Of a stretch of 64,000 bases of DNA, positions 1 to 49,535 are shown piece by piece (the first letter of the stretch is position 1; every line of letters begins with the position of its first letter). The stretch is taken from positions 284,702 through 348,701 of the IMG/VR virus record IMGVR_UViG_3300023174_000038; one strand, 5' to 3'. The notes beneath the pieces are model-generated. The model had not been told where the DNA came from and did not search any database. It worked only from the letters and a program-made list of their open reading frames with translations. Made by a program: the position numbers and the translations under genes.

Positions 1-271
1 TGGTTATTGCCGTATTACCGGTAGAATACCCGTATCCAAAAATAGCTTTATCTGTACCGTAACCTGCGGCTGCAAGTTGATATCTAGCAGTGCCCACACC
101 AGTTGTATCTGTAGCAACTACACCCGCACTTGTTACTAGGTTGGTTATTGCTGTTACACCTACCCCACCAATGTATCCATATCCAAATATAGCTTTATTA
201 CCGCCTGGAGGTGGTGTAATAGCCCATCCTCCGCCATTTAATGTTATTCCACCTGTAATTGTTATTGACAT
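1..271 (-). CDS. Gly-rich repeat (Kelch/beta-propeller-like) protein, 5' part, runs off window
   Basis: Not in ORF track; hand translation from ATG at 271: MSITITGGITLNGGGWAITPPPGGNKAIFGYG...GTDKAIFGYG; N-terminus matches the 45943..46890 protein. Confidence 0.8.
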   Translation of the reverse strand, partial: MSITITGGITLNGGGWAITPPPGGNKAIFGYGYIGGVGVTAITNLVTSAGVVATDTTGVGTARYQLAAAGYGTDKAIFGYGYSTGNTAIT

Positions 272-281
272 TTTTTAACCT

Positions 282-1235
282 TTATTGAAAAATTTCTGGA
301 TGTGCTTTGCCAAATATCTTAATATACTTGCCAGCCATTACATCCGCTTCAGCTTCTATTGGACTACCAGGATAACTATCACCCGGCTTAATCATATTTA
401 ATTCACCCTGACGTACATGTGTTAATTCATGGAACACAGTACGTAATATATCTACTAAATTTCTATTAGCACAATAAACCCATACTTCACCCGTCTCTGG
501 ATTATGTCTTCCAGTATGATGACCTTCTTGTGCTTCATCACTATCATAACTAAACTCTATCTTTGGAGTATTTTGTAAATTCAACTTCTTACTTGTCCAA
601 GCAAGAAACTTCTGTACAATAGGATTACTATTCAAATCTTCTTGTTCAGCTTCTGTAATGTAGGGCTTTAATAACTCTGGATCATATCCTTTATGTCTAG
701 CAGAATCTCGTAATCGTCTTAACCCTTTAGCTTCAATTTGTCTTATTCTATCTCTAGACAAGTCAAACCTATCACCAATCTGTTGTAATGTCATGTCATA
801 CCAAAATCTTAAAATTAATACTTTTCGTTGGTCATCGGTTAATCTGTCTAAGCCGTTTTGGATAATTTGTTTAATACTATCATCTGTTGCAGGCTCCTCA
901 CCAGCTGGATCTTTATATGGTACTCGTTCTGCCCTATTATAAATATCGTTTGGATCATTTAATGTTGGCATTTTATTATGAGCTCCACGATATGTAGCAC
1001 CATCTGGGTTGTAATGTCGTCCTCCAACCTCATCTAGTTTATCTTTAATCCAATTGTCTGGAGTTTTATGATATTTTCTAACAAATAAATCATGCAATGC
1101 ATCACCAGTAATACGGTGTTTCTTTGCTATGTTTTTCATTAGCTTATCAATGGTATTATAGTCGTGTTTCTCTAAGCTAGGAAGTTTCTTAGCTAGTTCA
1201 ACTGCGGCTGATTCGTATAGTTCTATTGCTCTCAT
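282..1235 (-). CDS. Modular protein: capsid-targeting-like N-terminus, sigma-70 region 4 HTH, C-terminal HExxH metallopeptidase-like domain
   Basis: Likely start MRAIELYE at 1235 (TAAATA 5 nt upstream); LTDDQRKVLILRFWYDMTLQQIGDRFDLSRDRIRQIEAKGLRRLR is a typical sigma region 4; TVFHELTH..EAEA. Confidence 0.75.
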   Translation of the reverse strand: MRAIELYESAAVELAKKLPSLEKHDYNTIDKLMKNIAKKHRITGDALHDLFVRKYHKTPDNWIKDKLDEVGGRHYNPDGATYRGAHNKMPTLNDPNDIYNRAERVPYKDPAGEEPATDDSIKQIIQNGLDRLTDDQRKVLILRFWYDMTLQQIGDRFDLSRDRIRQIEAKGLRRLRDSARHKGYDPELLKPYITEAEQEDLNSNPIVQKFLAWTSKKLNLQNTPKIEFSYDSDEAQEGHHTGRHNPETGEVWVYCANRNLVDILRTVFHELTHVRQGELNMIKPGDSYPGSPIEAEADVMAGKYIKIFGKAHPEIFQ

Positions 1236-1269
1236 ATTAGTATTTATGCTCACTTTTGATTTCACAGTA

Positions 1270-1338
1270 GCGAATTGTTACATCAGGCCAGCAGCCGGCC
1301 CACACTTGAAAACGCAAAGGTCCTAAGGTAGTGTGTTC
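1270..1338. ncRNA. Candidate structured intergenic RNA
   Basis: GC-rich intergenic stretch with adjacent stems GGCC/GGCC and CACACT/AGTGTG; family not recognised. Confidence 0.3.
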
Positions 1339-2151
1339 TTAATCATTCGTCTTACATTTAGCACGTTTAGCATTGGTTAATGCTCCGTAATCTACTGGCC
1401 ATTCTTTACCAGGCTGTAACTCTTTAGCGTTTGCAGGGAAATGGTACTTTACACCTGCATATTCTTGTATCTGTGCTAATGGAGCACGAAACTGTGTCAA
1501 ATCATTACCCAAATTAACATATGGTTTCTTATGTGGGAACTGCCATCCAGCAACTTCATGTGTAACATTGTTAATAACAATCTTGTAGTAACCATGAGGA
1601 ACAACTACACCATTACCAATCTTTTCATTACCTGTACCATAATATGCACCTACATAAATTGTGAATGGTTGTTTTAGTTGTACTGCCCATCCACGTATAC
1701 TTGTTTCTAATAGTTTCCATATGCCACGATTCAATGAACCATGTTGAGGATACATATTAGTCATTAAAAAACTTTCATATTCTACTTGTTGTGTCCAAGA
1801 TAGATCACCATCTGGTGCAGCATGACCTTTGTCATAACCCGTAGCTACATAATCATCAGGCTTTGCACCATCTTTAATACTAGCATCAGCAACAAAAGCG
1901 TTTGTTCTTGGGAAACAACCTAAAGCATTTTCTGGCTTAAGAGTGTATGCTACATATACTGGTATCTTTGCTGGCGAATCATATGCTACAAGATATGCTT
2001 CACGACATATTGGTTGTGATGGTCTTGCTGTTTGTGCAAATCCGTACGGACTATGTATTTGACATTGTTGTACTGGTAAGGGAGCACGTTGATCCCATGC
2101 AAATATATTTGTTGATATTAGTACTGTTGCTATTGCTATTATTTTTTTCAT
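1339..2151 (-). CDS. DNA/RNA non-specific endonuclease (NucA/EndoG family) with signal peptide
   Basis: YDKGHAAP (DRGH-type) and TNMYPQ..LNRGIWKLLE motifs; N-terminal MKKIIAIATVLISTNIFA. Confidence 0.9.
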   Translation of the reverse strand: MKKIIAIATVLISTNIFAWDQRAPLPVQQCQIHSPYGFAQTARPSQPICREAYLVAYDSPAKIPVYVAYTLKPENALGCFPRTNAFVADASIKDGAKPDDYVATGYDKGHAAPDGDLSWTQQVEYESFLMTNMYPQHGSLNRGIWKLLETSIRGWAVQLKQPFTIYVGAYYGTGNEKIGNGVVVPHGYYKIVINNVTHEVAGWQFPHKKPYVNLGNDLTQFRAPLAQIQEYAGVKYHFPANAKELQPGKEWPVDYGALTNAKRAKCKTND

Positions 2152-2161
2152 TCAATCCTCT

Positions 2162-2788
2162 TTATCCTACTACTGTACGATTCTTTACTTTACTAATTTC
2201 TACACTGAGTGGTGTATTAGTTGTTTTTGCTCTAAATATCTTATCAGTCTCACGTACACCTGGCTTAAGTTCAGATGCTACAATTAAGAATCTTGCTCTA
2301 TTCTTTCTCATGCCAATAAACTCACCTACTAATACTTGGTAATTAGGATAGTTAGGTGTTAAATCTATTTTAGGATTTTCTTGTTCATTGATGCTTTCTG
2401 ACACACCTTGTGCAATTGCTTCACGTGCCTGACGTTCATTTTCTTGTTTGAATCGTTGCATGGCTTGACTATCATTTATTTGTCCACGATCCAGTGCTTG
2501 CCAAATTGGCAAATCAAATGTGAGATATTTTTTTTGTACTGCTTGAGCATAACTAACTTCATTGCCACGACCTTGCCAATCAGGTTTATGCCCCCAAACA
2601 ACAGATACAGATTGACCATTTGGGAAGTTGATACGCATACGCTCTCCATAAAATACATATGTACTACCTTGCCATGTAAAAGCAAGATCGCCATTAACTG
2701 TTTTACCCATAGACCAGCCATGCTTTTTTAACAGTGAATCAACTGCGGCTTGATTATCATTCTCAATAATAAACTCTGTTGCTCTCAT
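2162..2788 (-). CDS. Putative head-packaged two-module protein
   Basis: Start MRATEFIIE resembles T4 IPII/IPIII CTS MKTYQEFIAE; internal junction QGVSE-SINE. Confidence 0.6.
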   Translation of the reverse strand: MRATEFIIENDNQAAVDSLLKKHGWSMGKTVNGDLAFTWQGSTYVFYGERMRINFPNGQSVSVVWGHKPDWQGRGNEVSYAQAVQKKYLTFDLPIWQALDRGQINDSQAMQRFKQENERQAREAIAQGVSESINEQENPKIDLTPNYPNYQVLVGEFIGMRKNRARFLIVASELKPGVRETDKIFRAKTTNTPLSVEISKVKNRTVVG

Positions 2789-3228
2789 TACTCACGTTCT
2801 CTTTTTAATGTTGAACGGATAAACCATGCTTTCTTACCGTATAGGTCTTGCAGTTCAGCCATGTAGTTAGCAATACCCTGTTGACGTTCATTTGTTGCTT
2901 CATCAAACATAGCAACAACAAGTTGACCTAATGTTTCACAATCTTGTAGTAACTCAATAAACATGAGTTCAGCTCTTGGAACTTTAGTTTGGTCTTGAAT
3001 GATACTTAATTCAGCATAACGTGTTAGACTGCCAGGAGTATAGTGACCTAATATTCTGATATATTCAGCTACAGGATCAATAGTAGCATTTACATCTTCA
3101 TACAATGTATTAAAGAATTCGTGATATTGTGGGAAGTTACTTCCCTCCACATTCCAATGAAAGTTTTGTGATTTGATAGCAAAGCTTTGTGTACTAGCTA
3201 ATAGTACTTTTAAATTATCTGATAACAT
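2788..3228 (-). CDS. dps: Dps / ferritin-like protein
   Basis: NFHWNVEGSNFPQYHEFF..Y..D.VAE ferroxidase motifs, 146 aa. Confidence 0.92.
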   Translation of the reverse strand: MLSDNLKVLLASTQSFAIKSQNFHWNVEGSNFPQYHEFFNTLYEDVNATIDPVAEYIRILGHYTPGSLTRYAELSIIQDQTKVPRAELMFIELLQDCETLGQLVVAMFDEATNERQQGIANYMAELQDLYGKKAWFIRSTLKRERE

Positions 3229-3237
3229 GATTACTCG

Positions 3238-6200
3238 TTAGTCTTTCTTTTTTGTATTAACATTGATGGCTTTACCACTACGGTCAGGATTAGGATCTTC
3301 TCTACGTTTACGTTGAGCGGCACTTGCACGACCCTTCTTACCTAGACTATGTGCTTTACTTTGTGGCAAGCATTTTGGTTTACCTTCTCCTGGTTCTCTA
3401 GCACATGGACCTTTAATCTTTCCTTTAGTATCCATGCGAACCCACTTTTCTTTATTAAACCAATCATGCAAACTTTCATCTGCCCTTTCAATACCTTCTA
3501 GTATAGAACTTTCATTCTTCTTCCCACCGTTACCCCAGTTACTTGCGCCTTTGTTGCGACACTTAACTAATGCACCACTGGCATAAGCACTTGGCCATAC
3601 TTTATAACGACTCTTTACTTTGTAGTAGCAAGCATCTTTCTTTTCGTTCATTAATTCTTCACTAACCATTTCGCCACCACAGTGTGGGCAACTTTCACTG
3701 TGTTGGTCTTCATTTGTTTTATTTTTAGCACAACTACCCGGAAAGCCTGCTTTAGTACCAGCAACTCTATGATAGCCGGACCAGCATTTCAATTCATCTA
3801 GTTGATCTTTTGAATGGTCACCGTGTGTTTCACACATACCGCAGTCTTCACAGACCATTTCCATTTCAATGCTTTCATTGTGCTTCTTCTTACCTGCACA
3901 ATGAGCCTTTTGACTAAAGCCTTTAGGATGACTACAGTTAATACTGCTCTTATATTTTTGACTCCAGCCTTCATCCATCTCTTGTTCATTAACGTAAATT
4001 GCGGCAGTTGTTTTATTTAAACTTTGTGGATCTTTTACGCCGGCTGCTACTTTAATTGCTTTAACTTTTTGTCTATAGTCATCAGCATATTCGGCTAATC
4101 TGTAGCCTAACATTTTACCAATTTCTTCAGGTGTAGCTGGTTTATCTTGCGGAGTATTTGCACCAAAAGTTGTGTCTAGTATCTTAGGCCATGCCATCCA
4201 GACCATATTTGATAACTCTTTATATGCTTTGCTTCTTAATTCTTTAATTTGAGCTTCAGCCTCATCTTCAGAAATACTAGGTGCGGGTGCAGGAATAGTT
4301 CCTTTGAATGCTTGAGCATTACCGGCACCGCCTAATCCTGCGGCAGCTAATGCGCCGGCGCCTGCTGCCTTACCCATGTTACCTAAAAACCCTCTACGGT
4401 TCATATCAGCTTCTTTCAAACCTGATTTTTTACGTATATACAATCTATCCTGTAATATTGAAATAGCATTGTCTAACTTTTTATTCAATGATTGATAGTT
4501 ATCTTTTGCACCATACTTAACGTGCATACTAGTATCAGTATCATTCTGCATTGCAGGAGTTAACAAACCTTTACGTTCTAATCTATCAACTAACTTATCT
4601 AATAGTTCTTGCTTTTGTATAGCATTATCTAATTGTGCTAATCTAGCTTTTAATACAGAATGTTTTTCACCAGGTTGTGCAACTGGTGTTGGTTGAAATT
4701 CTCTACGTAAACCTTGTTGTGCTTTTTGTACTGTGTTCTTTTCAAAATCTTGTCTCCAAGCTTCTATTTCAGCTTCACGCTGTTTCTCTATAGCTAATTT
4801 AGCTTGAATCAACGCATCCAATGATGTAGATTTTAATTGATCACCTAAGTTTTCATCAATTGATGCATAACGCTTATCATCTAAATCATCGTGGTAACTT
4901 CTTTGTGGTGGTTTTTTTAGCTCTATTGGTTTCTTAGATGAACCTCTATAACCACGTTCCCATGCCGCTGCACCTGCTGCCGCACTTTTACCATTTTTAA
5001 CAAAGTGATTAATGACTTCTTGTTTACTGTTAAATCTAGGTGATTCTATACCTTCATTTGTTGCCATTTCGCCATCATTACTATGACCATAATATTTGGC
5101 TACTTTTTGTAAATCAGCAGAATTTCTATCGTTAAGATAATCAGTTACTAAATCATGTATCTGATATCTTTGTTCTTGCGGGGCTGGTAATTCTATTTCA
5201 CCTTCACTTGCATCAGCAATATGTGCGGCGCCGGGACTGTCTAAGAACCATATCTCATCATCCTCATCCCATTCTAATCCCCATTTGTCTATTGTTGCAG
5301 TTAATACATAGTTGTTAGTAGTACCTACTACAAATTTGTTACCGCCTATATAACGTGAGCTATTTGGTTGACCGTAATCTTTTGGTCCTTTAGGGCCGCC
5401 AGTTTGTACAAATTCATTTATACCTTGACTGATACCAGATTTCTTTGTATCATTAGCAAATTGTTTTTTAGTTGCACGAACAATACCACTGAAACGTTTA
5501 TCACCACGCTTGTAATCGCCCTCTTTATCAGCTTTTCCTGCATCGGCAGCGGCCGCTGTTTTATATTGTGCTAGTTTCTCATTAGAGATTTCATCTAGTT
5601 GTGATTCAGGCATTAATCCGTGCTTTGTAATACGAGCATCTAATTCATCACGCTCTTTGGAATATTTTTGTATAAGTTCTTTATTACCTACTTGAATTGC
5701 TTGTCTAAGTTTTTCCTGAATGGCATCTGCTAAATCATAGTATTGATCCATTTTCATTCTAGTGGTATTATCTTCTTTTATTGTTTTACCTTGACCTAAT
5801 TGTTGTAAATCACTTGTTAATACATCTTGTGTAACACTACCCATACCTTTTGAAATCGTAATGCGAGAATGTTTACGATCCTTACTCATAGCAACTACTT
5901 TTGATGGTTGTCCAAAATACTTAACAGTATCACCTATCTGTATGTTCTTCATAGATACATTACCAACATTAACCGGTTTATCACCTGCAAAGTTACCTTG
6001 ATCTCCCCATGGGTCATCTAAACTTTCATTTGTACCAGTAGCTAATCTATCATGGTCACTATCACGTTGGGCTTTTTCTGCCGCTGCCTTCATAGCACGA
6101 CCTTTAGCAAAATCTTTTTCTTGTCTTATTAAACCATATGGATCATACTCATCATCATCTGTTTGTGTATGTCTACCACGTTTAGGATATGATGGTGCAT

Positions 6201-6282
6201 CTGCCCCGTATTCTCTTGCTGGATCATTATGTCCGTAAAAAGGATTGGATTCGTTTATTATACCTTTTAGAATATTGCTCAT
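3238..6282 (-). CDS. 1014-aa modular polyprotein, putative head cargo
   Basis: More than 15 short unrelated modules separated by x-x-E junctions (IINE, GTNE, QLDE, GINE, SIDE, GLKE, KHNE, LMNE, SILE); internal Tat-like peptide; Cys/Lys-rich C-terminal modules. Confidence 0.7.
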   Translation of the reverse strand: MSNILKGIINESNPFYGHNDPAREYGADAPSYPKRGRHTQTDDDEYDPYGLIRQEKDFAKGRAMKAAAEKAQRDSDHDRLATGTNESLDDPWGDQGNFAGDKPVNVGNVSMKNIQIGDTVKYFGQPSKVVAMSKDRKHSRITISKGMGSVTQDVLTSDLQQLGQGKTIKEDNTTRMKMDQYYDLADAIQEKLRQAIQVGNKELIQKYSKERDELDARITKHGLMPESQLDEISNEKLAQYKTAAAADAGKADKEGDYKRGDKRFSGIVRATKKQFANDTKKSGISQGINEFVQTGGPKGPKDYGQPNSSRYIGGNKFVVGTTNNYVLTATIDKWGLEWDEDDEIWFLDSPGAAHIADASEGEIELPAPQEQRYQIHDLVTDYLNDRNSADLQKVAKYYGHSNDGEMATNEGIESPRFNSKQEVINHFVKNGKSAAAGAAAWERGYRGSSKKPIELKKPPQRSYHDDLDDKRYASIDENLGDQLKSTSLDALIQAKLAIEKQREAEIEAWRQDFEKNTVQKAQQGLRREFQPTPVAQPGEKHSVLKARLAQLDNAIQKQELLDKLVDRLERKGLLTPAMQNDTDTSMHVKYGAKDNYQSLNKKLDNAISILQDRLYIRKKSGLKEADMNRRGFLGNMGKAAGAGALAAAGLGGAGNAQAFKGTIPAPAPSISEDEAEAQIKELRSKAYKELSNMVWMAWPKILDTTFGANTPQDKPATPEEIGKMLGYRLAEYADDYRQKVKAIKVAAGVKDPQSLNKTTAAIYVNEQEMDEGWSQKYKSSINCSHPKGFSQKAHCAGKKKHNESIEMEMVCEDCGMCETHGDHSKDQLDELKCWSGYHRVAGTKAGFPGSCAKNKTNEDQHSESCPHCGGEMVSEELMNEKKDACYYKVKSRYKVWPSAYASGALVKCRNKGASNWGNGGKKNESSILEGIERADESLHDWFNKEKWVRMDTKGKIKGPCAREPGEGKPKCLPQSKAHSLGKKGRASAAQRKRREDPNPDRSGKAINVNTKKKD

Positions 6283-6283
6283 A

Positions 6284-7165
6284 TCACGCTTTCTTATTCT
6301 TGTTATCTAACATGCCACGCTTATTAGCTGTTGCCCAAGCAATGTTCTCCGCTTCTTTTTTACTGTGACCTAATTTCTTTTCACTTTGTGCTACATGCTT
6401 AACCATACGGTCTACTTTAGCACCTTCATCTATTGGTGCATGAACTGGACATTGGTCTTGACCATGTGTTCTACACACACATTTCAAATTAGGTTTGCCT
6501 TCTGCTACGCCCTGTTGACCATACGTATCAAGAATTTGTCTAACATAAAAATTATAAAAACCACGACGGCTATTGTATTCTCTATCTCCAAGTACAGTCT
6601 TTAGTGCTTTTACAGCATCAGTTACTTCTGGGCCACGCATTATTTTTAATGAGTCAGTAACTAGTGTATCACCTCTTTGTGAGCCTTCTGATACACCTTG
6701 AACTTGTTTACCTTCTAAGTATTCACGTATAGTGTTTAGATAATCATTGGCTTTAATAATCTTTTCTTGTACCCAACCATCAAGACCTTCTTCTTCACTA
6801 AGGTCTTTAATCATTGAATAAACTTGTTGAGCATTCTTTGCGGCACTGAATAGATCACTACGTGCCATCTCAACTTCGTGGTCTATACGACTTTGACCAT
6901 GTGGCACAAATCCATTTTTACGACTACGTCCTTGTCCCGGAACGACAATAACATCATCTTCTTGTAGTTCTGCTTCACTTATTTCAGCACTTTCATTAAT
7001 GCTGTTAGCATATGGAGCACTAGTCTTTTTACCCTTGAATAGTGTGCCTACTTTCTTGCCACCATATATGCTAGGATTTCCCCTAGATTGTGTGCCACCT
7101 AATGGTGAATTTACAGTAGCTATTGCACCTGCTGTTGTAGTTTCAGTGATTTGTTTGATTTTCAT
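6284..7165 (-). CDS. Modular putative head-packaged protein
   Basis: MKIKQITE start; junctions SINE, ELQE, QGVSE, QGVAE, PIDE. Confidence 0.65.
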   Translation of the reverse strand: MKIKQITETTTAGAIATVNSPLGGTQSRGNPSIYGGKKVGTLFKGKKTSAPYANSINESAEISEAELQEDDVIVVPGQGRSRKNGFVPHGQSRIDHEVEMARSDLFSAAKNAQQVYSMIKDLSEEEGLDGWVQEKIIKANDYLNTIREYLEGKQVQGVSEGSQRGDTLVTDSLKIMRGPEVTDAVKALKTVLGDREYNSRRGFYNFYVRQILDTYGQQGVAEGKPNLKCVCRTHGQDQCPVHAPIDEGAKVDRMVKHVAQSEKKLGHSKKEAENIAWATANKRGMLDNKNKKA

Positions 7166-10894: not shown

Positions 10895-11620
10895 TTAAAT
10901 AGCTTCTGGGCGTTTTTCTAATTTGTAACGTTTTCCAAGAAATTCCCCGTGCATTAGTGCTAGATAGCTTAATAGGGTTTCGTCATCATAATCAATAAAG
11001 TGATTACTATTGGTATAACGATAGCGCCAACTCCATGAAGGAGCAGTATTATTGTATCCTTGTAACCAGTATTTTAATGACGGGCTAGGATGTAAGTCTT
11101 TGGAACGTTTCAATAAATCATCTAATTGCGTAACAAATGATTCTTGGATCATTTTAGATTTCAAATAAACCCTATACTTATGTTTAGGGTCATTAACAAA
11201 TGCTTTTATTCCTACAAAATTATTTGTTTGAGCTTCTGTATAATCATAAAAGATACCATTTTTAATACTTTCACTAGTCTTTAATAAGGCTAAATCATTG
11301 CTAAAGATTGCTATTCTATTACTCTCAATACGAACTAATCCGGTATTGTTTTCTTTAATCATATTACGAAAATCTATAAACTTCCCAAGAGCCTCTAGAT
11401 TTTCTGTAACTACCGGTCTATCTGCATCTTTTATCTTTTTCCAACCAGTTAAGATATTATATCGTTTCATCAACCCATCAAAGTTTTTTTCATACATAGC
11501 ATATCTAACACCCTCTATAGAGAATCTTACACGATACTTGTATTTGCCATAGTAATCACTATCCCGATAATCGTAAAAATCAATACCCGGAGTATCAGTT
11601 GCTAATTTCAATAATCCCAT
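10895..11620 (-). CDS. Hypothetical protein
   Basis: 241 aa ORF with normal composition, follows clpA. Confidence 0.6.
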   Translation of the reverse strand: MGLLKLATDTPGIDFYDYRDSDYYGKYKYRVRFSIEGVRYAMYEKNFDGLMKRYNILTGWKKIKDADRPVVTENLEALGKFIDFRNMIKENNTGLVRIESNRIAIFSNDLALLKTSESIKNGIFYDYTEAQTNNFVGIKAFVNDPKHKYRVYLKSKMIQESFVTQLDDLLKRSKDLHPSPSLKYWLQGYNNTAPSWSWRYRYTNSNHFIDYDDETLLSYLALMHGEFLGKRYKLEKRPEAI

Positions 11621-13871
11621 CGGATCCTACTTTCGCTATTGATTTCTGTACTACATTGAACTCAATTTTATCATCTACTAATACACAAGTTACTGTAGCA
11701 TTTTTAATACGTTCAAACAATACTTTCTTACTGAGAGGTACACGAATCAATTCATCAATCTTCCGAGCTAATGGACGAGCACCCATCTTCTTATCATAAC
11801 CCTGTTCAGCCAAATAATCAATTACTGGCTCAGTTAAATTCAAACTGACATTATACTTGTCAAGTAATGATTTCTTTAGTTCTTCTGTAAACTTAATTAC
11901 AATCTTCTTAATAGCCAATGTATCTAGTTTACCAAACTTACAAATCAAATCAACACGATTTCTAAATTCTGGTTTGAAGAACTCTTTAATTGCTTTATCA
12001 TCCTCACCTGTCTTTTCTTGGCTACCGAATCCGATATTGTTTTTCTCACTATCACTACTACCCAAGTTACTAGTCATAATGATGATAGTATTTTTACAGT
12101 TAACTTCTTTACCATTACTACCAGTGATACGACCTTCATCTAACATCTGTAAGAAGATATTAAAGATATCCGGATGAGCTTTCTCTACTTCATCAAAGAG
12201 TAAGATACTATGTGGGTTCTTGCTCAAATCATTGATTAATCGTCCACCACCTACTTGACTATCACCAAAGCCAACATAGCCAGGAGGAGGACCAATCAAA
12301 CTTGATACAGAATGTTTCTCACTATATTCTGACATATCATACTTAAGTAATGTCATGTCAAGGTTTTTACTTAGTAGTTTAGCTAATTCTGTTTTACCTG
12401 TACCAGTTGGGCCTAAGAAGATAAAGCTTGCTGTAGGTTTGTTCTCATTACCAATACCAGCAAATGACACATATACACGTTCTAATACTTGTTCAACTGT
12501 TTCATCTTGTCCATACAGTTTACCTTTAATGTTAACTTCAAGGCTACTAATACGGTCGTAGTTATCATCGTTTAGTTTATCAGCAGGTACACCAGTGAAT
12601 CGTTCAACTTGTTCGTGTATTAGTTCTTTGGTAATTAATGCACCTTTGTTCATTGCAACACGTTGTTTAGCACAAGCCGCATCTAGCAAATCAATAGATT
12701 TGTCAGGGTTTTTACGGTCATGAATGTAACGTGCTGAACTATCAACTGCGGCAGTTATTGCTTCCTCAGTGATTTCTACTTCATGGAAATCATTCAACCG
12801 TGAGCTTAAACCTTTGAGGATACGAATTGTACTATCATGTGATGGTTCATCAATAGATACACGATAGAATCTACGCATCAATGCACGATCCTTCTCAAAA
12901 CTTTCGTAGTATTCTTCCCAAGTTGTACTAGCAATAACTTTAAGTGTACCTTTAGTGATAGCTGGTTTAATCATATTAGCAAAGTCAATACTTCCACTAG
13001 TAGATGAACCACTACCTTTCATGGTATGTGCTTCATCAATGAATAGTACTGATTTCTTTTTTGTGTTTAATGCATCCAGTACCTGTTTAACTTTTTCTTC
13101 AAAGTCACCACGATATTTACTTCCGGCAAGCAATGCACCTACTTCAAGTGAGTATAGTTCATGTCCGTGTAAGAATTCCGGTACTGTTTTATCAACTAGC
13201 ATTTGTGCTAGACCTTCAGCGATAGCAGTTTTACCTACACCCGGATCACCTACCATCAATACATTTGATTTGAAACGTTTAGCAAGAACATTAATCATAT
13301 CATCAAGTTCTGTACTACGACCAATCAACGGTTCAAGTTTACCTTGTCGTGCAAGATCGGTTAAGTTAGTAGTATATTCTTCAAGGATTTCATCAGCTTG
13401 ACTTTCTGATAGTTTAGCAGTGAACTCTTGACCCTTATATGTTTTTTGCCAATGTGCCACGAAATCATTTTTATTGATACCGTATTTTAATAAGAAATAA
13501 TGTGCATGACTATTGCCCTCACTAGCGATAGAGAGATATAAGTCAATAGTAGTTACTTGTCTACGACCAGTAAACAATACTTGTGTTACAGAACGATTCA
13601 TTACACGTTCCAAGCTATTTGTTTTGCGTGGTTGAACTTCTGTATCTGGATCTACTTTAGCTACAATAGCGTGTAAGCTATCAATATATGAAGTAACCTC
13701 TTGAATCATATTTGGGGTATCGCACCCAAAACTATCCAAACATTTTTTAAATGGTGTATGTGTTATAAGAGATAACAGTAAATGTTCAATTGTACAATAT
13801 TGATGTTTACGTTGTTTAGACAACTCAATAGCCTGTTCAATGATGGCTTCAATTTCGGGTGAATTATTCAC
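11595..13871 (-). CDS. clpA: ClpA-type Hsp100 AAA+ unfoldase
   Basis: GTG start with SD; Clp N-domain; two Walker A (GDPGVGKT, GPTGTGKT) and B (FIDEAH, LFDEVEK); no ClpB middle domain; IGF ClpP-docking loop. Confidence 0.92.
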   Translation of the reverse strand: MNNSPEIEAIIEQAIELSKQRKHQYCTIEHLLLSLITHTPFKKCLDSFGCDTPNMIQEVTSYIDSLHAIVAKVDPDTEVQPRKTNSLERVMNRSVTQVLFTGRRQVTTIDLYLSIASEGNSHAHYFLLKYGINKNDFVAHWQKTYKGQEFTAKLSESQADEILEEYTTNLTDLARQGKLEPLIGRSTELDDMINVLAKRFKSNVLMVGDPGVGKTAIAEGLAQMLVDKTVPEFLHGHELYSLEVGALLAGSKYRGDFEEKVKQVLDALNTKKKSVLFIDEAHTMKGSGSSTSGSIDFANMIKPAITKGTLKVIASTTWEEYYESFEKDRALMRRFYRVSIDEPSHDSTIRILKGLSSRLNDFHEVEITEEAITAAVDSSARYIHDRKNPDKSIDLLDAACAKQRVAMNKGALITKELIHEQVERFTGVPADKLNDDNYDRISSLEVNIKGKLYGQDETVEQVLERVYVSFAGIGNENKPTASFIFLGPTGTGKTELAKLLSKNLDMTLLKYDMSEYSEKHSVSSLIGPPPGYVGFGDSQVGGGRLINDLSKNPHSILLFDEVEKAHPDIFNIFLQMLDEGRITGSNGKEVNCKNTIIIMTSNLGSSDSEKNNIGFGSQEKTGEDDKAIKEFFKPEFRNRVDLICKFGKLDTLAIKKIVIKFTEELKKSLLDKYNVSLNLTEPVIDYLAEQGYDKKMGARPLARKIDELIRVPLSKKVLFERIKNATVTCVLVDDKIEFNVVQKSIAKVGSDGIIEISN

Positions 13872-49474: not shown

Positions 49475-49506
49475 TAAGTTCTCCTAAATTTATAGCGCAT
49501 TTATGT

Positions 49507-49535
49507 ATTATAGCAGATGTTCCATTTGTTGTCAA
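49507..49535 (-). promoter_or_regulatory. Consensus sigma70 promoter
   Basis: TTGACA-17 nt-TATAAT with TGn extension. Confidence 0.85.

Follow-up and report, generated by a model that had tools for sequence, protein, structure and literature searches.

Layout of the locus and of the encoded protein

The window analysed here is a stretch of 64,000 nt taken from the IMG/VR virus record IMGVR_UViG_3300023174_000038 (positions 284,702 to 348,701 of that record; G000:C1:284702-348701). We describe one gene in its first 1.3 kb, which encodes a 317 aa protein with a lone sigma-70 region 4 (sigma-4) placed between a helical N-terminal domain and a C-terminal HExxH domain. The record comprises 348,701 bp with a GC content of 36% and is complete by CheckV; metagenomes from lakes and other freshwater sites contain this DNA. 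Among the products of the genome are a T4-type prohead protease (Peptidase_S77, E 1.7e-28; head maturation protease phrog_207, E 4e-61) and a late sigma factor that is gp55-like (phrog_12791, E 1.6e-70). At its N-terminus the major capsid protein shares ~60% identity with its counterparts in PA5oct and further jumbo phages of Escherichia, Klebsiella, Cronobacter and related hosts, and no match at the DNA level was obtained among cultured phages. The phage is a T4-related freshwater jumbo phage.

The open frame of the gene (282..1265, minus strand) extends to a GTG at 1265. Every homologue begins at the ATG at 1235, and residues are numbered from there. The features of the gene are as follows.

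282..1235 (-): gene, 317 aa plus stop, ATG at 1235, protein beginning with MRAIELYES
1241..1248 (-): CATAAATA, late-promoter motif that agrees with the T4 consensus TATAAATA in 7/8 positions, 5 nt before the ATG
1212..1235 (-): tag MRAIELYE of capsid-targeting-like type, aa 1-8, with the first [LI]xE site (LYE8) at its end
1029..1211 (-): N-terminal helical domain (N-domain) of the chassis, aa 9-69, ending in KLDE
651..1028 (-): cargo cassette of motif, acidic linker and sigma region 4, aa 70-195, 14.7 kDa, isoelectric point (pI) 8.1
933..1013 (-): motif preceding sigma-4, YNPDGxTYRGxxNKMPTLNDPxDIYNR, aa 75-101
660..893 (-): sigma-70 region 4.1-4.2, aa 115-192, with the Pfam core at nt 708-851 and the recognition helix at ~nt 708-758
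651..659 (-): ITE, third [LI]xE site at the border of cargo and peptidase, aa 193-195
285..650 (-): zincin metallopeptidase domain, aa 196-317; HELTH covers nt 417-431, and E294, predicted as third zinc ligand, nt 354-356

The protein thus reads as tag, helical N-domain, cargo cassette with sigma region 4 and C-terminal HExxH domain. The original prediction, made from the sequence of this stretch, had described KLDE and YITE junctions around the sigma domain and a separate HELTH domain behind it. All three are located in the translated protein as stated: KLDE at aa 66-69 (nt 1029-1040), YITE at aa 192-195 (nt 651-662) and HELTH at aa 269-273 (nt 417-431). While this anatomical reading was borne out, it had overlooked that the cargo is interchangeable, that an invariant companion motif precedes sigma-4 and that the peptidase is part of the chassis.

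The sigma domain is a complete region 4

Region 4 of sigma factors binds promoter -35 DNA and the flap of RNA polymerase. In our protein Pfam Sigma70_r4 matches aa 129-176 (E 8.4e-19; 67 bits, the cut-off being 24), and the corresponding span of nt 708-851 agrees with the helix-turn-helix (HTH) that had been placed at about 705-855. The missing of regions 2 and 3, which had been claimed as well, was confirmed in that Pfam and NCBIfam match region 4 alone and find neither Sigma70_r2 nor Sigma70_r3 in the protein. Genome-wide (348.7 kb) there is no Sigma70_r2 or Sigma70_r3 either, and the only Sigma70_r4 is the domain described here. The sigma-70 family label given by the Joint Genome Institute (JGI) to relatives fits our protein with respect to region 4 and does not fit it with respect to region 2; its N-terminal domain is the one that cargo-less relatives have as well.

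Using HMMER against PDB, aa 115-181 align to residues 534-604 of E. coli sigma70, that is to the whole of regions 4.1 and 4.2. The equivalents of R562, F563, R584, R586, R588, Q589, K593 and L598 are kept and E585 is replaced by D, while a four-residue insertion (NTDY) of the aligned E. coli RpoD is absent. An unrelated LuxR-type HTH, which would have spoken against the original prediction, is not what we find, because GerE/LuxR gave no match (no GerE at E <= 0.1); the top matches are Sigma70_r4 and Sigma70_r4_2, and all PDB matches are sigma factors. Judged by these alignments, the domain is a genuine, complete and primary-sigma-like region 4. Membership in the MzaA family was considered and rejected (69 bits against a cut-off of 800, with only the C-terminal region 4 aligned). 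The closest relatives of the sigma domain in 185,579 species genomes are 38-48% identical and spread across many phyla, and neither a cellular donor nor a host can be inferred from this set.

Selection was evaluated by the ratio of non-synonymous to synonymous polymorphism (pN/pS) between the window and the sigma-4-bearing locus L008. The values are 0.14 for the N-domain, 0.10 for the motif region, 0.25 for sigma-4 and 0.06 for the peptidase. By this measure every module is under purifying selection, with sigma-4 being the least constrained. Within the module R161 and D162 vary more than all other positions, as judged from 45 distinct sequences with sigma-4. They align to sigma70 R584 and E585, the base-reading residues of the -35 recognition helix. 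Moreover, base-reading residues differ between the window and L008 (D162N, Q166E). Invariant or nearly so are the 4.1 helix (K122, I125, L132), W145, L175 and the C-terminal helix (E187, Y192). Since the equivalents of R584 and E585 vary most, a fixed -35 readout is disfavoured; the conservation pattern argues against it and speaks for protein contacts. When the sigma-4 fragment was modelled once in complex with the beta flap of E. coli (RpoB 825-945), the score was 0.19, which counts neither way.

A conserved motif accompanies the sigma domain

Upstream of sigma-4 the cassette carries a motif of ~25 aa with 16 invariant residues, which is its best-conserved stretch. In the 45 sequences Y75, P77, G79, T81-G84, M89, P90, L92, P95 and D97-Y99 are invariant. 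The motif is predicted to be disordered, with a predicted local distance difference test (pLDDT) of 32-43. It accompanies sigma-4 also in the family member P0057 and was not found outside this family in a region search of a set of 5.8 billion proteins.

The part of a full sigma factor that lies 15-40 residues upstream of region 4.1 threads the RNA exit channel. Because the corresponding stretch of sigma takes this path, we propose that the motif is probably a second contact on RNA polymerase, by analogy of position. A profile search of PDB detected no similarity of the motif to sigma region 3.2. A diverged sigma finger is therefore a speculative reading of the motif.

A chassis family with interchangeable cargoes

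A family search of the 5.8 billion proteins returned 1,459 matches, and exhaustive querying by phmmer, for which the 191-aa form was used, yielded 1,818 representatives of clusters at 50% identity. The commonest form of the family has 191-194 aa and consists of the helical N-domain directly joined to the HExxH domain, without sigma-4. Many other relatives match in two stretches with 50-570 aa of unrelated sequence in between. The N-domain of the 191-aa form is modelled by AlphaFold2 (AF2) as four helices (pLDDT ~90); its E69 is invariant and L67 nearly so. It occurs on other proteins, too (P0261, P0264).

Partner domains were assigned by a Pfam scan of 100 family members with two-stretch matches. 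Found more than once were DUF6321 (7), DUF5661 (3), Sigma70_r4 (2), GH19 (2), GGACT (2) and DUF5872 (2), while GNATs, ParB_N, dCMP deaminase, Lon_C, LysM, M48 and a DnaJ-type zinc finger are single cases. One family member carries the Thoeris inhibitor Tad3 (E 1.2e-31). In P0057 the sigma-4 module stands at the N-terminus instead.

An alignment of the DNA of the window, L008 and the cargo-less locus L014 shows flanks of ~95% identity and one clean in-frame difference of 378 nt. The joint without cassette (644/648->1029) is also present in contigs of two independent lake RNA libraries, which as contigs alone show neither transcription nor a 5' end. RNA libraries contain relatives of the chassis, too. 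The sigma-4 cassette occurs in carriers that are only ~50% identical to our protein (P0060, P0067, P0079) and is absent from P0030 with 95% identity. Gain, loss or exchange of the cassette has therefore been independent of the chassis. The 191-aa gene of relatives occupies the very locus of our gene. Since close relatives manage without the cassette, it is accessory. Taken together, these comparisons indicate that sigma-4 is one interchangeable cargo of a widespread chassis, and that the peptidase belongs to this chassis and is no sigma-4-specific partner.

The C-terminal domain resembles zincin peptidases

No family of Pfam or NCBIfam is significant for the HExxH domain. The AF2 model of the 191-aa form (pLDDT 90) consists of the four N-terminal helices, a further helix, three strands, the HExxH helix and a second long helix (strands at 100-128, helices at 134-152 and 166-185). 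H269, E270, H273 and E294 are invariant, the last standing 21 residues after the HExxH motif. The model hence has what defines a zincin, namely an HExxH helix and a downstream Glu on the next helix after a three-stranded sheet. Foldseek searches with the model gave the following matches (TM, template modelling score).

PDB: SPRTN, proabylysin, selecase, Wss1, IrrE/PprI and CapP; probability mostly 0.9-0.99 (CapP 0.66), TM ~0.4-0.56 by target
AlphaFold clusters: SprT-like, IrrE N-terminal-like and DUF4157; E 2.7e-5, TM ~0.5
Viral models (BFVD): viral IrrE/SprT-like proteins of uncultured phages, with the domain alone or fused to amidoligase, AAA or cytidyltransferase; E 6e-9

The assumption that the HExxH module may be a zinc peptidase is well in line with this predicted SprT/IrrE/minigluzincin fold and its invariant H, E and H plus downstream E. 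Only the peptidase domain matches a protein of a cultured phage, a 132-aa protein of Synechococcus phage S-SRM01 without the tag. A zincin metallopeptidase (MPTase) is the hub domain in 'polyvalent proteins' that phages and plasmids inject (Iyer et al. 2017, PMC5512222). As far as the model goes, the C-terminal domain fits this MPTase.

Tag and putative cleavage sites

In T4 a 10-residue tag suffices for packaging; its residues 4 and 7 serve targeting, whereas cleavage by gp21 after Glu depends on residues 8 and 10 (PMC9026906, PMC5694885). The start of our protein, MRAIELYE, resembles that of T4 IPII/IPIII (MKTYQEFIAE). It had been called similar to a capsid-targeting sequence (CTS) before, and this holds insofar as N-termini of its kind recur in the genome and in relatives. 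Tag-like starts are found on otherwise unrelated open reading frames (ORFs) of the genome, namely MRAKEFITE, MRAIEFVTE, MRATHFLTE, MRFTEIITE, MNFVELFE and MRATEFIIE (window 2162-2788). These other tagged proteins have almost no known domains, just DUF6321 and GP88. Within the family 182 of 269 retrieved members have an [LI]xE that ends at aa 5-13. Two hallmarks of internal head proteins, a tag ending in L/I-x-E and a gp21-type prohead protease encoded by the phage, are hence both present.

Our protein contains exactly three [LI]xE sites (aa 8, 69 and 195). They mark the borders of tag and N-domain, N-domain and cargo, and cargo and peptidase, and none lies inside a folded domain. The conservation of such border sites was determined in the same 269 proteins, which are partly related to each other (the phmmer set consists of representatives at 50% identity). 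Directly after the N-domain [LIV]xE is found in 93% of the members having that domain, compared to 21% of random windows of 16 aa. Likewise, 95% have [LIVFM]xE 6-26 aa before the peptidase domain, compared to 33% of random windows of 20 aa. Three cuts would lead to fragments of 7.1, 14.7 (the sigma-4 cargo with its pI of 8.1) and 13.9 kDa.

In the cultured relative PA5oct, whose annotation marks virion proteins detected by mass spectrometry (MS), the strict tag pattern matched nothing. EST35_0150 of this phage (MK797984.1 82921-83142) is an MS-detected 'structural protein' of 73 aa, is encoded between the portal and scaffold genes and starts with MKINDIITE, a tag of the type seen in our phage.

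Promoters

Late promoters of T4 have the sequence TATAAATA. In our phage the 30 nt around CATAAATA are invariant in five relatives. The pattern [TC]ATAAATA occurs at 54 sites in the genome, 24 of which lie within 40 nt upstream of a correctly oriented ORF. As these zones make up 2.2% of the sequence, the pattern is ~20-fold enriched directly upstream of ORFs. Half of the upstream sites (12/24) stand 3-8 nt from the ATG, including the one of our gene (window 1233-1248, minus strand). Based on the upstream enrichment and this spacing, the late motif is real and often implies near-leaderless mRNAs; for our gene a near-leaderless, late mRNA is predicted. The late-promoter context claimed in the original prediction is supported by CATAAATA and the gp55-like sigma factor, while the late promoter itself is plausible yet only predicted. 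No -35 partner of the late motif is visible. Several genes with a close late motif resemble homing endonucleases (starts MSHKHHIIPK and MFYYLYKITN).

A second promoter type, TTGACA-ATAAATGG-N7-TGn-TAyAAT, is present in ~30 near-identical copies in two clusters of the genome and is regarded as early.

Window about 49,500-49,535 (-), as an example; G000 4174-27941 and 192135-260478: early-type promoters, about half with extended -10

In total 52 TTGACA-N17-TATAAT-like sites were counted compared to ~22 in shuffles, 26 of the 52 with an extended -10 (TGn). Extended -10 promoters rely less on region 4. Since its early promoters often have this extension, the phage could tolerate an interference with region 4.

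Proposed mechanism and alternatives

We propose that the gene is transcribed late from its T4-type promoter, and that MRAIELYE together with the 60-aa helical domain brings the precursor into the prohead core. The T4-type prohead protease would then cut after Glu at aa 8, 69 and 195, leaving a 14.7-kDa sigma-4 fragment and a 13.9-kDa zincin peptidase in the capsid, and both fragments would be ejected with the DNA into the next host. There, the sigma-4 fragment may act as an early host-takeover effector on the host RNA polymerase or on sigma-4-binding factors. It appears to keep the hydrophobic cleft by which region 4 holds the beta-flap tip and region-4-binding regulators, and would most likely work by protein contacts and less by one fixed -35 sequence, with the invariant motif 15-20 residues upstream as probable second contact. 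On function, the original prediction had suggested that a released sigma-4 decoy could compete for the flap, block -35 elements or titrate anti-sigma factors; any such activity is putative. Peptidase and N-domain would represent a general delivery chassis for many cargoes. An injected sigma-4 effector is favoured because the companion cargoes (Tad3, GNAT, ParB, deaminase, cell-wall enzymes) typify effectors of takeover or counter-defence. For the whole chain, that is a virion-packed, protease-released and injected sigma-4 effector acting via protein contacts, we see about an even chance. A bolder version would have freshwater T4-related jumbo phages share a standard delivery chassis into which cargo cassettes are exchanged by recombination, one of them being sigma region 4 with its new motif, preloaded in the capsid to seize the beta-flap/RNA-exit side of the host RNA polymerase before phage expression. 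This version is tentative, and we would sooner bet against it.

Several points weigh against such an effector. Against the tethered region 4 of the holoenzyme, free sigma-4 would be a poor competitor. The cassette is accessory and dispensed with in close relatives. Moreover, the early promoters of the phage have perfect TTGACA -35 boxes, so blocking of -35 recognition could hurt the phage itself; such boxes also suggest that the phage relies on region 4. We infer packaging, cleavage and ejection throughout from motifs, and three [LI]xE sites are roughly what the composition predicts (3.5), so that only their placement and conservation are informative. In PA5oct, which is a weak proxy, a looser tag pattern gave 3 matches versus 1 in the control, with EST35_0150 as the only MS-detected one.

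Alternatively, the protein could stay uncleaved, or be cut only N-terminally, and use sigma-4 to dock the zincin onto RNA polymerase, promoter DNA or a sigma-4-binding protein. Such a guided protease would need few injected copies because it is catalytic. The nearest folds of the peptidase (SPRTN, Wss1, IrrE/PprI, CapP) belong to protease families whose targets are DNA-bound proteins or repressors and whose members are often DNA-activated. The catalytic residues are invariant, and the peptidase is the most constrained part of the protein. Cleavage of host proteins is a possible role of this type of peptidase as well (Iyer et al. 2017, PMC5512222). We nevertheless hold sigma-4-guided proteolysis to be unlikely: the peptidase also exists cargo-less (191 aa) or with unrelated LysM, GH19, Tad3 and GNAT domains and hence is not sigma-4-specific, a conserved protease-type site separates it from sigma-4, and P0057 has sigma-4 at the other end. 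Less likely still is a cofactor of phage transcription, either as the region-4 half of a two-piece sigma factor with the gp55-like protein or as a gp33-like flap binder, serving a -35-like promoter class. The kept equivalents of R584, R586, R588 and Q589 fit this possibility, as does a genome that has a gp55-like late sigma factor and a single region 4 without any full sigma70-type factor. SigO-RsoA of Bacillus subtilis is a precedent for a sigma factor of two subunits. Stand-alone sigma-4-only proteins are common in phages, and minimal single-HTH sigma factors as well as gp33 are known from this jumbo-phage group (Iyer et al. 2021, PMC7824862). However, ~95%-identical alleles at the same locus lack the cassette, which is therefore not essential for the transcription programme. 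In addition, the cassette is embedded in a tagged chassis at a hypervariable cargo locus, the positions contacting bases are the most variable ones, and a -35 partner of the late motif is not seen.

It is also conceivable that tag and [LI]xE borders are no capsid or cleavage signals at all and that the protein is an ordinary cytoplasmic multidomain regulator or peptidase. The [LI]xE count at chance expectation and the marginal PA5oct check would agree with that, and an MRAxEF start could reflect constraints of translation initiation on near-leaderless mRNAs. We consider this improbable, given that the tag ends in hydrophobic-x-Glu as in the T4 CTS and is common to many unrelated proteins of one hypervariable locus, that the border sites are kept in 93-95% of members whatever the insert, and that a T4-type protease is encoded. 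Regarding counter-defence, the fragment might be a decoy that mimics region 4 of a defence sigma-like protein (e.g. MzaA) or titrates an anti-sigma factor or a region-4-binding sensor. The best NCBIfam match is indeed the C-terminus of MzaA, the sigma-like component of the anti-phage system Mza (over aa 97-197, with 69 bits compared to 51 for RpoD), PADLOC reports MzaA matches, Tad3 is found in another chassis member and the rapid change at surface positions fits an arms race. The MzaA match, however, is local to region 4 with a cut-off of 800 bits, and that of PADLOC (32 bits) is no better than for a generic sigma factor, which makes a decoy quite improbable in our view. Hardly credible to us is a structural or DNA-marking internal protein, with sigma-4 sitting on TTGACA sites of the encapsidated phage DNA for condensing, piloting or pre-marking of early promoters. 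T4 internal proteins are basic and DNA-associated, and the ~30 near-identical TTGACA-ATAAATGG-N7-TGn-TAyAAT early promoters and the fragment pI of 8.1 are in line with this. Against it, base-reading residues are not constant even among close relatives (window versus L008: D162N and Q166E), cassette-less relatives exist, and occupancy of the -35 would block early transcription.

Relation to known systems

Phage factors known to us that redirect the host RNA polymerase via sigma region 4 or the beta flap are produced once infection has begun, and to our knowledge there is no earlier virion-delivered sigma-domain mimic. If the proposed injection is true, a capsid-borne sigma-4 acting at time zero would be a new tactic and the first mimic of this kind. 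T4 AsiA and gp33 share the predicted target, the interface of sigma region 4 and beta flap. They differ in being made after infection and in not being homologues of sigma-4, whereas here a true copy of sigma-4 is predicted to be delivered pre-made. Both occur in this group of jumbo phages, where gp33 is encoded and AsiA is present in some (PMC7824862). Stand-alone sigma-4-only proteins resemble our cassette by their lone Sigma70_r4; they comprise about 90-113 aa and form many clusters in viruses and bacteria. In contrast to these free genes, sigma-4 here is a cassette in a tagged chassis and always goes with the companion motif. Minimal sigma factors have been noted in group 2 jumbo phages (PMC7824862).

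The T4 proteins IPI, IPII, IPIII and Alt are alike in the short tag ending in hydrophobic-x-Glu, the T4-type prohead protease and the unrelated tagged genes in hypervariable loci. Host takeover and counter-defence would be the expected roles in both cases (PMC3012670, PMC9026906). Beyond the tag there is no homology. Instead, we find a 60-aa domain, cleavage-type sites around a swappable cassette and a peptidase that is always attached, and packaging is predicted for our protein.

The polyvalent proteins (Iyer, Burroughs, Anand, de Souza, Aravind 2017) are similar by their predicted entry with the DNA, the zincin MPTase as a hub and effectors of GNAT and ParB type. Their MPTase was proposed to release domains or to act as effector itself (PMC5512222). 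The pairing of sigma-4 with an MPTase places our protein among them as a small two-domain case, and its relatives pair the MPTase with other effectors. With 191-770 aa the chassis proteins are much smaller, they keep the fixed order of tag, N-domain, cargo and MPTase, and their borders look like sites of a prohead protease and not of autoprocessing. A sigma domain is not part of that paper, as 'sigma' has 0 occurrences in its text (PMC5512222). As to the fold, SprT/SPRTN, Wss1, IrrE/ImmA and the minigluzincins proabylysin and selecase share the three-stranded sheet, the HExxH helix and the helix with the Glu ligand (probability 0.99-1.0, TM ~0.5). They differ from our domain by a sequence identity of 12-28%, with no significant sequence family.

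Hence, lone sigma-4 proteins, CTS-tagged internal proteins and MPTase polyvalent proteins are already known. New are the fixed chassis with its slot flanked by protease-type sites, sigma region 4 as a cassette and the invariant companion motif. A literature search found no paper on any of these (cassette chassis, sigma-4 cassette, companion motif). The chassis may matter more than the sigma domain, as it seemingly loads interchangeable proteins into phage heads and comprises >1,800 clusters in lake and marine metagenomes. Candidate early effectors and counter-defence proteins, Tad3 among them, could be catalogued from its cargoes, and its natural rules could guide the engineering of phages for protein delivery. 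The invariant motif of ~25 aa represents a specific and testable target.

Neighbouring genes

In relatives the locus has the order Dps, variable genes, secreted nuclease, this gene and Gly-rich protein, onward to DNA polymerase B. Window 2162-7165 (minus strand; loci L005-L009) is a hypervariable block between the conserved Dps/ferritin and the secreted nuclease, whose genes all start with a tag of the MRAxEFIxE type. Starts in the block of relatives are MRAKEFIIE, MRANEFLIE, MRLSEFITE, MRATDFITE and MRSTEFIIE. Its products differ among close relatives and include an amidoligase, a GH19, a faint acetyltransferase match (in L006 also a weak nucleotidyltransferase) and proteins without assignment. 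By its organisation this tagged block resembles the variable internal-protein loci of T-even phages.

The Dps/ferritin-like protein is encoded at window 2788-3228 (minus strand; Pfam Ferritin, E 1e-14). The nuclease gene at window 1339-2151 (minus strand) codes for a DNA/RNA non-specific endonuclease (Endonuclease_NS, E 1e-36) with the Sec-type signal peptide MKKIIAIATVLISTNIFA. In sigma-4-bearing relatives a gene of the staphylococcal nuclease type (SNase) takes its place. Between nuclease and our gene the intergenic region (window 1266-1338, minus strand) is unusually conserved in relatives. It holds CTTAGGACC, a hairpin and AATTCGCTACTG and could be an RNA element or a processing site.

1286..1300 (-): small GC-rich hairpin between the nuclease and our gene, with a stem length that varies among relatives and without a T-run

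On the other side window 1-278 (minus strand) contains the start of the Gly-rich repetitive protein, which has ~310 aa in relatives (MSITITGGFTLDGGG..., KAIFGYGY repeats). Its gene is tandemly duplicated in some relatives (two 309-aa genes in L008).

A 1014-aa ORF at 3238-6282 begins with the tag-like MSNILKGIINE. It contains an internal signal of the twin-arginine (Tat) type, ADMNRRGFLGNMGKAAGAGALAAAGLGGAGNAQA, at window 4285-4404 (minus strand), directly after an LKE (aa 622-624). This suggests that a cut of the head protease at LKE would expose a Tat-like N-terminus, by which an injected protein may be re-exported to the host periplasm. In the chassis family, P0144 has a Pfam TAT_signal match within its insert. 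Further on, window 11595-13871 (minus strand) encodes a 758-aa AAA+ homologue of an 'ATP-dependent protease' (phrog_4871, E 7e-238).

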